Both the position numbers and the translations under genes were made by a program. A stretch of DNA of 64,000 nucleotides from Blastocladiella emersonii ATCC 22665 (Eukaryota > Fungi > Blastocladiomycota): NCBI GenBank assembly GCA_025594325.1, contig JANHCV010000004.1, forward strand, positions 744,001 to 808,000. Reading direction: 5' to 3'. Each line of letters begins with the position of its first letter. Position 1 is the first letter of the stretch. Under the pieces are notes generated by a model. That model was not told where the DNA came from and did no database searches. It saw only the letters and a list, made by a program, of their open reading frames with translations. Below, in pieces: positions 39,092-55,681 of this stretch.

Positions 39092-41828
39092 TCACGAACG
39101 CGCGCTCTCGTACGCGCTCCACCCGACGGGCGCGACGCGCTTGAACTCGGCCACGCACTCGGACCGGCCCGACTGCTTGAACTTGTTGACACTGCGCTTG
39201 ATCCACGCCGCGTCGCGGACCGCGTCGAGCGCGCCGTCGGGCACCTGGCGCCAGAAATCGGCCATGACGGGACACCCCTTCTTCGAGATGGTGCTGAGCA
39301 GCGCGCCGAGATCCGCGCCGATCAGGACCCGCACCAGCTCGCGCACGGGGAACTGGACGTGGTGCGCGCGGCAAGCCGCGGGCATCGCCGCCTGCGCCTG
39401 CGCCTGCGCCTTCTTGCTGCGGCTCCCGCCGCTCGTCTTGTTGAACGGCTGGTCGAGCCGCGTGCTCAGCTCGAACAGGCGCCGGATCGCCGTCTTGCTG
39501 AACTCGGGCAGCTGCGCAAGCCCAACGCCGCGCGCGCCCAGCAGGTCGCGCAGCGTCGCGAACCACGGCGACTGGCCCGACAGCGTGCACTGGTTGCACG
39601 TCCGCGCGGCGACGCCATCGATGGCCGAAGTGTACTCGAGCACCGCGCGCAGCTTGCACCCGCTGGCATCGAACTGCGCGGCGACCATGATCCCGAGCAG
39701 CTTGCGCGCGAGGGACGCGTTCCCCGCGACCTGCGCGAGCGCGCGGGCCCGCGTCGCCGGGTGCTGGAACCCGCCGACGACGAGCCAGTGCGCGCACGTG
39801 TACCCCTCGCAGTCGGCTTCCTTGGCGCGGTTGAGGACGGCGACCATGAGGTCGAACAGCGGCGCGATTTTGTCTGCGATCGTGAGGCCGGCGAACACGG
39901 ACGCGAAGCGGCGGCCCGGGTCGGCGAGCGGCTGCGTCTTGAATGAGTTGGGGTCGCGGCCCGCGTGGATGATGGCTGCGAACCGGCCCGTGAGCATGGG
40001 CAGCTCGCTGGGCAGTTCCTCCTGCGCAAACTCGAAGAGACGCCGCGCGTTAGCCATGCCGGGCGAGTGGTGCATGAGACAGGCGTAGAAGGCTATACAC
40101 GCGCACGCGAGAACGTTAGTTAGTTAGGGAGAGCCGCGCGCTCGCAAACGCTCGCGTACCATGCTCGACAACTGTCGCGAGCTGCGACCCGATCCGCGAG
40201 AGCACCTCGTCCTTGAACCCGGGGAGCACCAGGTCGGCGCTGCGGTTGAGCACGCGGGTCAAGAGGAACCCAAGCGTGTCCGTGTCGAGCAGCTGGTCGG
40301 CCTCGAAGACACTGAGTACGTCGCTGGCGCCGATGCCACCAACCACATTCTGCCGAACCAAGACTGCAAGTTCAGCCCGCTGCTCGGGCTTCGCGCTTGA
40401 GAGCAGCTTCTTCGAGTAACGTGTGAGCGCGTGCGACAGGACCTCGTGCATGTGCGGCTTCATGAGGTGCGAGAGCAGGTTCGCGGCGAGAAGCATGTTG
40501 GCGAGGGGCTCCGCCGACTGCATGAGCCAGTCGAGCGTGCGCGTCACGTCAGCGGCGGCCTCGGACTTCTTGGGAAAGTGGTGGTTGAGGACGGCGCTCG
40601 GAAGATAGTGGCCCAAGCCCAAGCGGAGCATGCAGGGCACGTCGAGCGCGATGCCCAGGTCGGTCACGCCCTCGAGGAATCCGGGCTTCCACGAATAGAC
40701 GGCAAGCAGCGCGAGGTAGTCGACGAAGCGCATTGGTTCAGGTGTCGCGCAAAAGTGAGAGATGGACGAGCCGACGTTTGAAGGGTGTGTGAAAAACCAC
40801 TCGGTGCTCTTGATCTCGAGCAGCTCGGGCGCCCATTCGACCGTGGCTTCGAGCGCCCAGCGCGCCGACGTCGCGTCGCACTGCGTCGAGGTCCAGTAGA
40901 GCAGCCGCAGCTGGCAGTACACGGGCGACTCGGTGCACGACGGGATCCGCGGCGGCTTGCGGTGGTACGCGCGGTCCTCGAAGTAGTCGAGGTCGTCGTA
41001 TTCGGGCTCGCTCCCGTCGACGTACGGTTCCTCCGAGTCGTCGTAGTAGGCGTCGGAAAACTCGGAGTCGTACTCGTCGTCGTCCTCGTCGTCGAAATCC
41101 GAGTCGGTTTCCTCGTCCGAGTCCGAGTGCTCCGACAAGTCGTCTCCGTTGTTGCCGCCGCCATGGTTCAAGTTAGCGGCACCCGCGTTGGCGGCCGTCG
41201 CGTTAGCAGCAGTCGGAGCGGTAGCGGTCGTGTGGATAGCGGAAGCGATGGCGCCCGATCCAGTTGAAGCGCCCGACTTCGGAGCGGCGGGCGGCGTAGG
41301 CTTGCCGAGCTCGTTCGTCGGGCGCGAAACGAGCGCGAGGAGCTTGTCCGGGTTCGACGCCCAGCTCGCGCGCAGCGGCTGCATGATGTCGAGGAAGACG
41401 TTCGACGCGGCGAGGAAGAAGTTGCGGTTGGGGCGCTTCGTGGAGTAGTCCTTGGAGTGGTACAGGTAGCCGCCCAAGTCGGTCTCGGGGAGCTCGTCAG
41501 GGTGCGTCCAGCGGAGCTCGTCGTCGTCCAAGACGCTCCGCAGCCACGGCGTCAGGCGGCGCCGGTTCCACACGCGCTTGACGCCCCATTCGGAAACAAT
41601 GTCGTGGAACTCGCGCGTCGCGGTGGAGACCTCGTCGCGCGGGTCGGCAACCTGGAGCACCGTGATGAGAAGCTCGGACGGAAGCAGGCTGAACTCGAAC
41701 TCGAACTCGAACTCGAACTCGTCGGCGACGCCGCCTGAAAGCGCGAGGTCGTCGGTATTCGCGCCGAGATCGGAATGCAGCAAGTTTTGATTCATAATGT
41801 GTTCATTCGATTGCATGGTAGGGGGCAT
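39092..41828 (-). CDS. Array copy 1 (intact): F-box-like protein, exons 41828-40160 and 40092-39092, 889 aa
   Basis: F-box-like FSLLPSELLITVLQVADPRDEVSTATREFHDIVSEWGVKRVW. A 67 nt phase-1 intron (GTACGC...CTAAC...TAG) joins the two ORFs in frame. Confidence 0.85.
41691..41720 (-). repeat. (GAACTC)5 coding microsatellite giving EFEFEFEFEF just before the F-box of copy 1
   Basis: Read directly from the sequence; absent from the other copies. Confidence 0.9.
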
Positions 41829-41878
41829 GGACGAATGAGCGACGCCTCGAGTTTCGACCTCGATCGGACGTTTCGCTC

Positions 41879-52904: not shown

Positions 52905-55681
52905 TTACACCAAGTCCGCGGTCGCGAGCGGGGCGACGCGCTTGAGCTCGGCGACGCACTCGAGCTGCTGCGAGCGCATGGACTGCACGATGCCGCGCTC
53001 GACCCAATCGGCGTCGCGCACCGCGTCGAGGGCGCCGTCGGGGATCTGGCGCCAGAAGTCGGCCATGGTTGGGCAGCCCCTGGGCGCGAGGATGGTGAGG
53101 AACGCGTCAAGGTCGGCGCACGCGAGGATGCGGACGAGCTCGCGCACGGGGAACCCGACGTGGTGCGCGTCGCAGCCGGCCGGCAGGTTCGACTGCGCCG
53201 CCTGGTTCTTGTTCTTGTTCCTGTTCTTCTTGTTGCGGCCCTTGAAGCCGAACATTTTCGAGTTGCTGCGGAACGGGGCGTCGAGGCTCGAGGACGTCTC
53301 GAACAGGCGGCGGATCGCCTTCTCGACAAACTTGGGCAGCTGCAGAGGGCTGCCGACCAGGGACACGAGGTCGTACAGCGTCGCGAACCACGGCGCCTGG
53401 CCCGCCAGCGTGCACTTGTTGCACGTGCGCTCGCCGAACCCGTGCATGACTGACGCGCGGGTGTCGCACCCGCCGACTTCGAGCTGCGCCGCGACCATGA
53501 TCCCAAGCAGCTTCGCGGGGAGGTCCGCGTGCTGCTGGACCTGGAGCGCTGCGGCATGTCGCGTCCCCATGTTCTGGAACGCGGCGACGATGATCCAGTG
53601 GAGGGCGACGAGGTCGGCGCACGCGTCGTCGGGTGAGCCGTTGACGACGGCGACGGCGAGCTTGAAGAGGTTGATGATGTTGTAGCCGGTCGGGACGCCG
53701 AACACGAAGTCGAAGCGCTTGCGCGGGTTGGCGAGCGGCTTGCGTTTCGTGTCCTCGGGGTCGCGGCCCGTGCGGATGCACGACGCGAAGTCGGCGAGCA
53801 TCGACGGCAGCAGGTTCGGCACCTGCTTCTGCGCAAACTCGAAGACGTGGCGCGCGTACGCCATGCCCTGCGTGTGCGAGACGAGGCAGTGGTGGAAGGC
53901 TACACGTTCGGGCGCGTAGGTCGTGTCAGTTGTCATTGCGGAGTGATTAGTGGTGGCGCGAGGAACGACGCACTCGAGAGGATCACGCGAGGGAGATCCG
54001 CGCCCGCGCGCGCGACCACGTCCTGCGCGAGCCCGGGCAGCGTGCGCTCGCCGTCCTTGCTGAGCGCGCGCGCGAGAAGGAGCGCCAGCGTCTCCTTGTC
54101 GAGCACGTTTTGCGCAGCGAAGATGCCAAGAAAATCCGTGGCGCCGCTGGCGGCGGCCTGGCGGGCCGAGACAACGAGCTTGACGCGGTCTGCGGGCGTC
54201 GTGTGCGACAGCAGCTTGCCCGGGTAATAAGTCAGCATGTGAAGGAGCGCGTCCTTGAAGCGCGGCTTGAGGAGCATCATCAGGACGCCCGAAGTAATCA
54301 AGCGGTCGCCAAGCGTCGGCACAGCGCGGAACAGCCAGTCGAACGTGCGCGACGCGTCGGAAGGCGTCGGGGGCTTGACGCCGGCCAGGTTGTACTCGAA
54401 GTGCCGATTAGGGTGAACGTGGGCATTGCTGTAAGTGGTCAGCAGGGACGCGTCAATGGAAAGGCCCAGATCGGAGAGGCCCTCGAGGAATCCGGACTTC
54501 CACGAGTAAATTGCGATGAGCGCGAGGTAGTCGAGCAGGCGTATTGGCGCCGGCCGCGGGCCGGAAGCGAACATGGAGAAGGAAATGGTCTCGTGAACAA
54601 TGTACCAGTTGCGACACTTGAGCTCGAGCAGCTCGGGCGCCCACTCGTAGGTATCCTTGAGCAGCCAGCGCGCGGCCGTCGAGTCGCCCCGTGAGACGGC
54701 CTCGACGAGCAGCTGGACCTGCGAGAAGACGGGCGACTTGAGGCACGACGGGAGACGAGGCGTGCGACGGTGATAGGGGCGACCGCCGTCGTAAAAGTCG
54801 TGCGAGTGGAAGCCGAAACCGTAGTCGTCGTCGTGAAAGAAGCCGCCGTACTCGCCATAATCGTCGTAGGAGTACTCGGAGTCGAAAGCGTCGCTGTAGC
54901 CGTCGTAATCGTCGTACTCGTCGTAATCGTCATACTCGTCGTAATCGTCGTCGCCGTCCGACTCGGTGTACTCGGTGTACCCCTCCTCGCCCGACCCCGA
55001 GTCGTCGGAGTAGTCCGAGTCGCCGTCGTCGCTCTCCGGGTCCGAGCTGGAAGCGCCCGAGCTGGAAGCGCCCGAGCTGGAGACCGCGGTCGGGCCCAAA
55101 CTCGCAGCTGGCGCCGCAGACGCGGTCGTGGTCGGACCCGGGGTCGCCGCCGGCGCGGCAGCCGCGGTCTTGGCCGACTTCTTGGCCTTGCCGGTATCCT
55201 TGACGGGCGCGGTGGCGAGATCAAGAAGGCGCTTCGTATCCGATGCCCACGAGGCGCGAAGCGGCTGCATGAGGTCGAGGAACACGTCGGAAGCGGCGAG
55301 GAAAAAGTAACGACCGGGATGCTCCGGACAGATCGGGTCGCCGTTTAAATCAAAGTAGCCCTCGAGGTCGGTGAGCGGGAGGTCTTCGGGGTGCGTGTAA
55401 CGAAGCTCCTCGTCGTCAAGGCCGGCGAGAAGCCACGGCGTGAGGCGGCGGCGGTTCCAGACGCGCTTGACGCCCCACTCGGTGGTAATGTCCTGGATCT
55501 CGCGCGTCGCGGTGGAAACGCAGTCGCGCGGCTCGGCGAGCTGCAGGACCGTGATGAGCAGCTCGGACGGCAGCGTGCTGAGGTGGAGGTCGGCGTCGTC
55601 GCCGTTCGGGCACTCGTTGGCCCCGTCGTCGGGACCAGAATGCGGTAAGTTTTGCTTCATGGTAGGCGGGTTCAGATGCAT
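52905..55681 (-). CDS. Array copy 6 (intact): exons 55681-53974 and 53899-52905, 900 aa
   Basis: F-box-like LSTLPSELLITVLQLAEPRDCVSTATREIQDITTEWGVKRVW; 74 nt phase-1 intron GTGCGT...CTGAC...TAG. Confidence 0.88.

Follow-up and report, generated by a model that had tools for sequence, protein, structure and literature searches.

A head-to-tail birth-and-death array of two-exon genes with a putative F-box-like cassette in Blastocladiella emersonii

The closest described counterparts of the genes examined here are the F-box adaptor expansions of plants (FBX) and Caenorhabditis nematodes, which form tandem arrays with many pseudogenes, diverge rapidly, are strongly restricted to their lineages, and encode proteins in which a short N-terminal LPxE(L/I)L cassette is followed by a variable C-terminal region (PMC3030570, PMC3719486, PMC12951971). 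These traits are shared by an array of genes at positions 39092-55681, on the minus strand, of a 64,000 nt stretch of the Blastocladiella emersonii ATCC 22665 genome (record positions 744001-808000 of contig JANHCV010000004.1 in the PacBio HiFi assembly GCA_025594325.1; Leonard et al. 2022, PMC9730499), referred to below in its whole length as the window. Unlike the plant and nematode proteins, the B. emersonii cassette passes no F-box model or profile test and none of the domains known to accompany F-boxes (LRR, WD40, Kelch, FBA or ankyrin) is matched by the C-terminal domains. The family evolves by birth and death in tandem arrays; it is undescribed and, as far as public data show, restricted to B. 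emersonii. Its mechanistic label as an F-box or SCF (Skp1-cullin-F-box) adaptor family is plausible but unproven.

The open reading frame (ORF) map of the window shows long minus-strand ORFs in alternating pairs from 39.1 to 55.7 kb, and repeat analysis returned repeat families of 4-7 copies at a spacing of 2.0-3.7 kb with identities of 60-86%. Together with tblastn searches using copy 1, these data resolve the region into six head-to-tail units (copies 1 to 6, or c1 to c6) and one C-terminal remnant (Table 1). At the ORF-pair junctions we found introns with GT(A/G)CG/AT...(T/C)AG borders and CTAAC/CTAAT-like branch sites, and all five (in c1, c2, c3, c5 and c6) are in phase 1, after the first base of one and the same codon. 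The copy 1 protein is identical to NCBI H9P43_004008 of B. emersonii ATCC 22665, a model that uses the predicted intron and whose annotated protein is continuous over the junction (...VVEH followed by AFYACL...). An earlier reading of this DNA, made from its letters alone (the sequence-only reading), had proposed six units and a remnant head-to-tail on the minus strand, a phase-1 intron of 67-77 nt at a shared position in five copies, ORF pairs that are really single genes of 760-900 aa, and intact copies 1, 3 and 6 among copies 2, 4, 5 and a remnant that were each broken differently. The ORF map, repeat families, tblastn, splice models and the NCBI intron of c1 bear out this arrangement copy by copy, all of the shared motifs it listed can be seen in our copy alignment, and its label of an early-diverging fungus is correct because the source is B. 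emersonii.

Three of the copies are intact. Copies 1 and 6 are two-exon genes of 889 aa (counted from the first ATG; the NCBI model starts at the second Met and gives 878 aa) and 900 aa, respectively, the latter carrying a long Ala/Ser/Thr plus Asp/Glu/Tyr insert, and the copy 3 ORF encodes about 763 aa (ATG at 48094) without the long acidic insert. Copy 2 is a pseudogene that contains two or more in-frame stops, shifts frame near 43760 and has diverged at its C-terminal end, and copy 5 has a single in-frame stop, the TAG at 51411-51413 (codon 427), with the rest in frame. Copy 4 is heavily damaged, and an in-place inversion of ~480 bp covers its middle domain. The interval 48200-52800 shows zero differences from independently assembled contigs of two other sequencing runs of the same sample, and therefore the inversion in c4 and the stop in c5 are real and not assembly errors. 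NCBI annotation calls no gene for c2, c3 or c4 and only a 57-aa tail of c5. Copy 6 was absent from the database proteins returned by either protein search.

Table 1. Window coordinates of the array units and of the sequence elements discussed in the text.
Feature	Position	Strand	Details
Copy 1 (c1)	39092..41828	-	Exons 41828-40160 / 40092-39092; intron 40093-40159, 67 nt, phase 1
Remnant	41992..42253	-	~90 C-terminal residues only (FWR..PDGAL tail); tblastn high-scoring segment pairs = copy 1 residues 779-871; repeat families D5, D18
Copy 2 (c2)	42977..45522	-	Exons 45522-43956 / 43886-42977; intron 43887-43955, 69 nt
Copy 3 (c3)	45734..48094	-	Exons 48094-46756 / 46686-45734; intron 46687-46755, 69 nt
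Copy 4 (c4)	about 48284..50250	-	Heavily broken; stops in N-terminal part, most of exon 2 deleted; tblastn
Inverted middle segment of c4	49155..49638	+	Residues ~260-420 of copy 1; tblastn; BLASTP 50% identity to c1, E 1e-49
Copy 5 (c5)	50284..52691	-	Exons 52691-51338 / 51260-50284; intron 51261-51337, 77 nt
Copy 6 (c6)	52905..55681	-	Exons 55681-53974 / 53899-52905; intron 53900-53973, 74 nt, phase 1
N-terminal cassette of copy 6 (LPSELL...VKRVWNRRRL..WL)	55412..55591	-	Proposed F-box-like motif; equivalent stretch in every copy
CxxC...CxxH stretch of copy 1	39359..39598	-	Possible four-ligand metal site, then FWRxVPDGALD; columns inspected across 20 paralogues
Upstream element GAGACGCGTCGCGAAATCACGTTTTG	41877..41903 (before c1); 45579-45605 (before c2); 48153-48179 (before c3)	-	Alignment of upstream regions

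An array-copy profile was searched exhaustively against 1.84 billion representative proteins, which returned 29 relatives at E ≤ 0.001. The source was looked up for 27 of these and every one is B. emersonii (27/27), spread over at least 7 contigs and often with neighbouring locus tags. Neither IMG/VR nor the JGI metagenome contigs yielded a relative in pattern scans, and no Pfam family reached significance in any of the exons and sub-regions or in 15 N-termini. The unrecognised and lineage-restricted character claimed for the family in the sequence-only reading therefore holds, where species-restricted means no relative in the public data searched, the library's content of other Blastocladiomycota being unverified. 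Homologue searches with c6 exon 1, a 24-row family alignment and an N-terminal alignment brought up copy 1 alone or no protein at all, but low-complexity words swamped their choice of candidates and their blanks are uninformative. At about 841.5-851.9 kb of the record (L002:4700-15110), ~37 kb beyond the window end, five or more further copies form a second head-to-tail array. At least one of its copies has an in-frame stop in the N-terminal cassette, and a single copy is annotated, as H9P43_004020 (328 aa, C-terminal half only). Several other annotated family "proteins" are fragments or fusions; in P0005 (H9P43_007187, 1425 aa) another N-terminal cassette, at residue ~697, comes directly after a family C-terminal tail (..FAVWRAVDDGL..), and the model probably reads through from one tandem copy into the next.

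Some duplication units run from the end of one gene through the spacer into the start of the next, as in the unit-spanning matches of 45269-45519 with 47856-48106 (85%) and of 45797-45993 with 48353-48549 (81%). Repeat units of this kind fit unequal crossing-over with breakpoints inside genes. The units were born in this way, promoter included; the copies then diverged deeply, and some of them succumbed to stops, to a frameshift, or to an inversion and deletions. In a maximum-likelihood tree of the C-terminal domains, the window copies, the second-array copies and one gene from another contig form one subfamily (support 93/93), the tree is star-like with terminal branches of about 0.5 substitutions per site, and the window copies are not monophyletic relative to the second array; the duplications are therefore old rather than recent. 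The tree, the splice models and tblastn thus agree with the birth-and-death array that had been proposed.

A short element, GAGACGCGTCGCGAAATCACGTTTTG, of 25-27 nt, precedes the start codons of c1, c2 and c3 by about 50-60 nt and is kept there with no more than 2 mismatches though the sequence on either side has diverged. Before c4 it can still be recognised, before c5 and c6 its form is degenerate, and it also precedes one copy of the second array; a pattern search gave 4 matches at ≤3 mismatches versus 0 expected. The element includes ACGCGT and TCGCGAAA, which we take to resemble MCB (MluI cell-cycle box) and E2F-type cell-cycle boxes. A 22-nt exact copy of GACGCGTCGCGAAATCACGTTTT was also seen at window 2716-2742 on the plus strand, far from the array and with flanks that have no similarity to it. 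This copy suggests that the element may be a discrete cis-regulatory motif in use elsewhere in the genome.

The outer and inner copies differ in base composition. Copies 1 and 6 have a GC content of 0.66, a GC content at third codon positions (GC3) of 0.88 and an observed/expected CpG ratio of 1.4, as opposed to about 0.57, 0.68 and 1.07-1.2 for the inner copies c2 to c5, in which CpA+TpG is raised. Taken singly, GC3 is 0.887 in c1 and 0.881 in c6, like other genes of this GC-rich genome, versus 0.683 in c3 and 0.68 in c5. Candidates for the cause of this gap are expression level, biased gene conversion and methylation. Mutation resembling repeat-induced point mutation found no support, as TpA/ApT is not raised.

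With four of the seven units broken, c3 uncalled in the public annotation, and the inner copies lower in GC3 and CpG ratio, the array could be functionless, consisting of segmental duplicates of a dying gene in which the intact copies are intact by chance. However, when c1 or c6 was allowed to decay neutrally with an AT bias to a GC3 of 0.68, the simulated sequences accumulated 17-19 in-frame stops (minimum 7), none of 300 runs had one stop or fewer, and GC content at first codon positions fell to about 0.50 versus 0.61 in c3 and c5. Pseudogene decay as the reason for the low GC3 of c3 and c5 is therefore ruled out. Since c3 has no stop and c5 only one, coding constraint has been kept, in c5 until recently, and only the synonymous sites of these two copies evolved differently, via weaker codon-usage selection or weaker biased gene conversion. 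A further, rough sign of such constraint is a ratio of nonsynonymous to synonymous substitution (dN/dS) of 0.4-0.7. In addition, ORFs of 2.3-2.7 kb persist despite a nonsynonymous divergence (dN) of about 0.46 between copies, and deeply diverged paralogues still share the upstream element as well as their N- and C-terminal motifs. We consider a functionless array highly improbable.

Each unit encodes a protein of about 760-900 aa that is predicted to be soluble, all-helical and built of five parts. These are a strongly conserved N-terminal cassette of ~55 residues (LPxELLxxVLQLAxPRD...VxRxW), another helical stretch that is conserved, an acidic linker of low complexity that is hypervariable, a helical middle domain, and a C-terminal domain with a CxxC...Cxx(H/C) set of putative metal ligands and the FWRxVPDGALD signature. 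The cassette occupies residues ~35-90 of every full-length member and is the best-conserved part of the family, with a mean column identity of 54% versus 16% for the family as a whole, in paralogues that are otherwise 18-30% identical. An N-terminal docking cassette followed by a variable region is one trait of F-box substrate receptors, and the proteins have this layout. The constant cassette would dock to a partner that is conserved in the cell, with Skp1 of an SCF ubiquitin ligase as the most plausible candidate, while the faster-evolving middle and C-terminal domains would bind variable targets. A real birth-and-death array of such modular adaptors, most plausibly docking to Skp1, is the explanation we lean towards, though tentatively and at a little short of an even chance.

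That the cassette itself is a true, very diverged F-box is about as likely as not, or slightly less, and several signals speak in its favour. Pfam family PF12937 (F-box-like) is matched by the 67-residue cassette of c6 at E 0.033 and by P0005 at E 0.037, as the sole Pfam match for both, and it is the most frequent weak match among the N-termini (2/15, E 0.12). Across 12 paralogues LPxELLxxVL is near-invariant and the Trp of VxRxW is invariant. Compared with the Skp2 F-box (PDB 1fs1, 1fqv), LPDELLLGIF in Skp2 corresponds to LPSELLITVL here, with Leu-Pro, an acidic residue and a hydrophobic heptad at the start, and VCKRW to the later VKRVW, and three helices are predicted in the same order, as in the AlphaFold2 model of the N-terminal 146 residues, which has a predicted local distance difference test (pLDDT) score of 62. 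We also prepared a rough F-box profile, which is not curated, being made of six sequences plus one verified sequence, that of Skp2, and which recovers Skp2 when that is left out (E 2e-18). This profile finds the LPxELL piece in 5 of 12 cassettes and the VKRVW piece too in 3 of those, and its hhalign score against the family beats 146 of 150 column shuffles (4/150 as good; empirical p about 0.03). Language-model features of residues 25-165 place F-box clusters on top at 0.78-0.84, which is a lead only.

A number of results weigh against an F-box and against the adaptor reading built on it. The PF12937 score of about 14 bits compares with a cut-off of 24.3 bits and covers only model positions 1-25 of 47, and PF00646 was never reported. 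The two family profiles, A3 and A5, retrieved no F-box chain from the PDB at E ≤ 10, where a single Skp2 F-box, used as a positive control, finds more than 20 other F-box proteins. With the rough profile the hhalign score is 13.4, at a probability of 2% and over only 17 columns, and HMMER gives no more than 4-7 bits. The spacing between the two conserved elements is ~12 residues longer than in canonical F-boxes such as that of Skp2, so that a fit to both F-box halves requires an insertion of this length between helix 2 and helix 3. In the AlphaFold2 model pLDDT is below 50 over the motif, and a model of such low confidence cannot decide on a three-helix F-box fold; Foldseek (PDB, AlphaFold database clusters, Swiss-Prot models and ESM Atlas) and VIA-align wide gave no F-box match and only generic helical/solenoid noise (TM score <0.3, Z ≤ 3.1). 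The public annotation is another such point, as its gene models are ab initio predictions by funannotate, with expressed sequence tags used for completeness assessment only (PMC9730499). Lastly, dN/dS, one of the checks named in the sequence-only reading, can be given only roughly: the pairwise values of 0.4-0.7 overall and of about 1.0 for the c1-c6 C-terminal domain go with a dS of 0.65-1.5, which is near saturation and distorted by codon bias, and no conclusion of positive selection is drawn. The F-box identity proposed in that reading is accordingly not established, and the profile check that it named for the N-terminus returned PF12937 below threshold (E 0.03-0.12).

These failures are what one would expect if this were an orphan family unrelated to ubiquitin ligases, with the cassette serving as a lineage-specific helical module for interaction or localisation. 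The basic KRVWNRRRL stretch, the acidic Asp/Glu/Tyr linker and a possible zinc site would suit, for example, nuclear or chromatin-associated scaffolds. All statistical tests for an F-box fail, no known fold is matched, and the CxxC...CxxH module recurs in a different architecture, that of P0024. On the other hand, F-box-like is the one family for which the c6 cassette and P0005 give any signal, if a sub-threshold one, the language-model matches agree with it, and the position and conservation pattern of the cassette are those of a docking domain. We regard an orphan family as a serious possibility, if on the doubtful side.

The Cys set in the C-terminal domain is well kept in the family. Its third Cys is present in 19 of the 19 paralogues that align there, three paralogues swap the first Cys and have a His nearby, and the fourth ligand position is filled by His within the array subfamily and by Cys outside it. 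The Cys module, of ~100 residues, is also found at the start of P0024 (hhalign 97%). P0024 and P0030 (H9P43_006716 and 006697, on another contig) are proteins of ~1340 aa (1342 aa for P0024) in which the Cys module is followed by true ankyrin repeats, along with long low-complexity and coiled regions. Its place in this architecture suggests that the module may be a mobile domain, and either the domain was shuffled into another architecture or these are fused gene models. An ankyrin identity for the C-terminal domain of the array proteins was considered and rejected: no Ank family appears in the Pfam scans, the C-terminal profile and the ankyrin region of P0024 reach only 2.5% in hhalign, and ankyrin was pointed to only by language-model feature matches (0.77-0.92). 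Sequence searches of the PDB with the C-terminal profile and the middle domain gave no match, and AlphaFold2 models full-length c1 as all-helical with a pLDDT of 56, the best stretches being residues 290-390 and 620-690.

The surroundings of the array raise the question of whether the family is part of a mobile element or endogenised virus, or was dispersed by one, which would make the array selfish DNA. The neighbourhood is rich in transposon relics, copies are found on many contigs, and the top whole-protein language-model match is a giant-virus cluster (0.92). A 982-aa ORF at 57565-60513 on the minus strand has a partial PIF1-like helicase match (E 7e-9) with faint UvrD_C/Herpes-helicase tails, and this too would fit such an origin, though no Rep (Helitron_like_N) domain was found in the adjoining ORFs. 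The transposon relics, however, lie outside the array, where plain head-to-tail duplication has produced units that have a short promoter of their own and share a conserved spliceosomal intron. Neither a transposase nor repeat termini were seen at the borders of the units, repeat analysis showing unit-to-unit similarity only, GC3 is host-optimal in c1 and c6, and no relative turned up in IMG/VR. A mobile or viral source is, in our judgement, very unlikely. As for the other neighbours, a PH-domain gene lies downstream of the array, and a gene divergent from copy 6, about 230 bp away at 55912-57027 on the plus strand, has a BTB-looking stretch, DLEVVLCGRTYALHRAVV...; it has no Pfam match and its only PDB matches are BCL6 BTB domains, which are faint (E about 1). 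The neighbouring genes are uninformative on the function of the array.

In its most far-reaching form, the adaptor reading would have a diverged F-box common to several expanded B. emersonii families, joined to a new metal-binding recognition domain, as a fast-turnover arsenal of SCF adaptors with which this early-diverging fungus would detect foreign or selfish proteins or tell self from non-self. We think this unlikely, and an antiviral, anti-transposon or allorecognition role is speculation.

The public annotation of B. emersonii, a model fungus, misses at least one intact member of the family (c3). If the cassette is an Skp1-binding F-box, the family would be a set of ubiquitin-ligase adaptors that expanded independently at the species level and carry a target-binding domain not seen before, paralleling the plant and nematode expansions in a fungal lineage for which no comparable case has been described. 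Even without an F-box, the locus provides a natural series of the birth, divergence and death of a young eukaryotic gene family, in which intact copies, a copy with one stop, a frameshifted copy, an inverted-and-deleted copy and a stub stand side by side.

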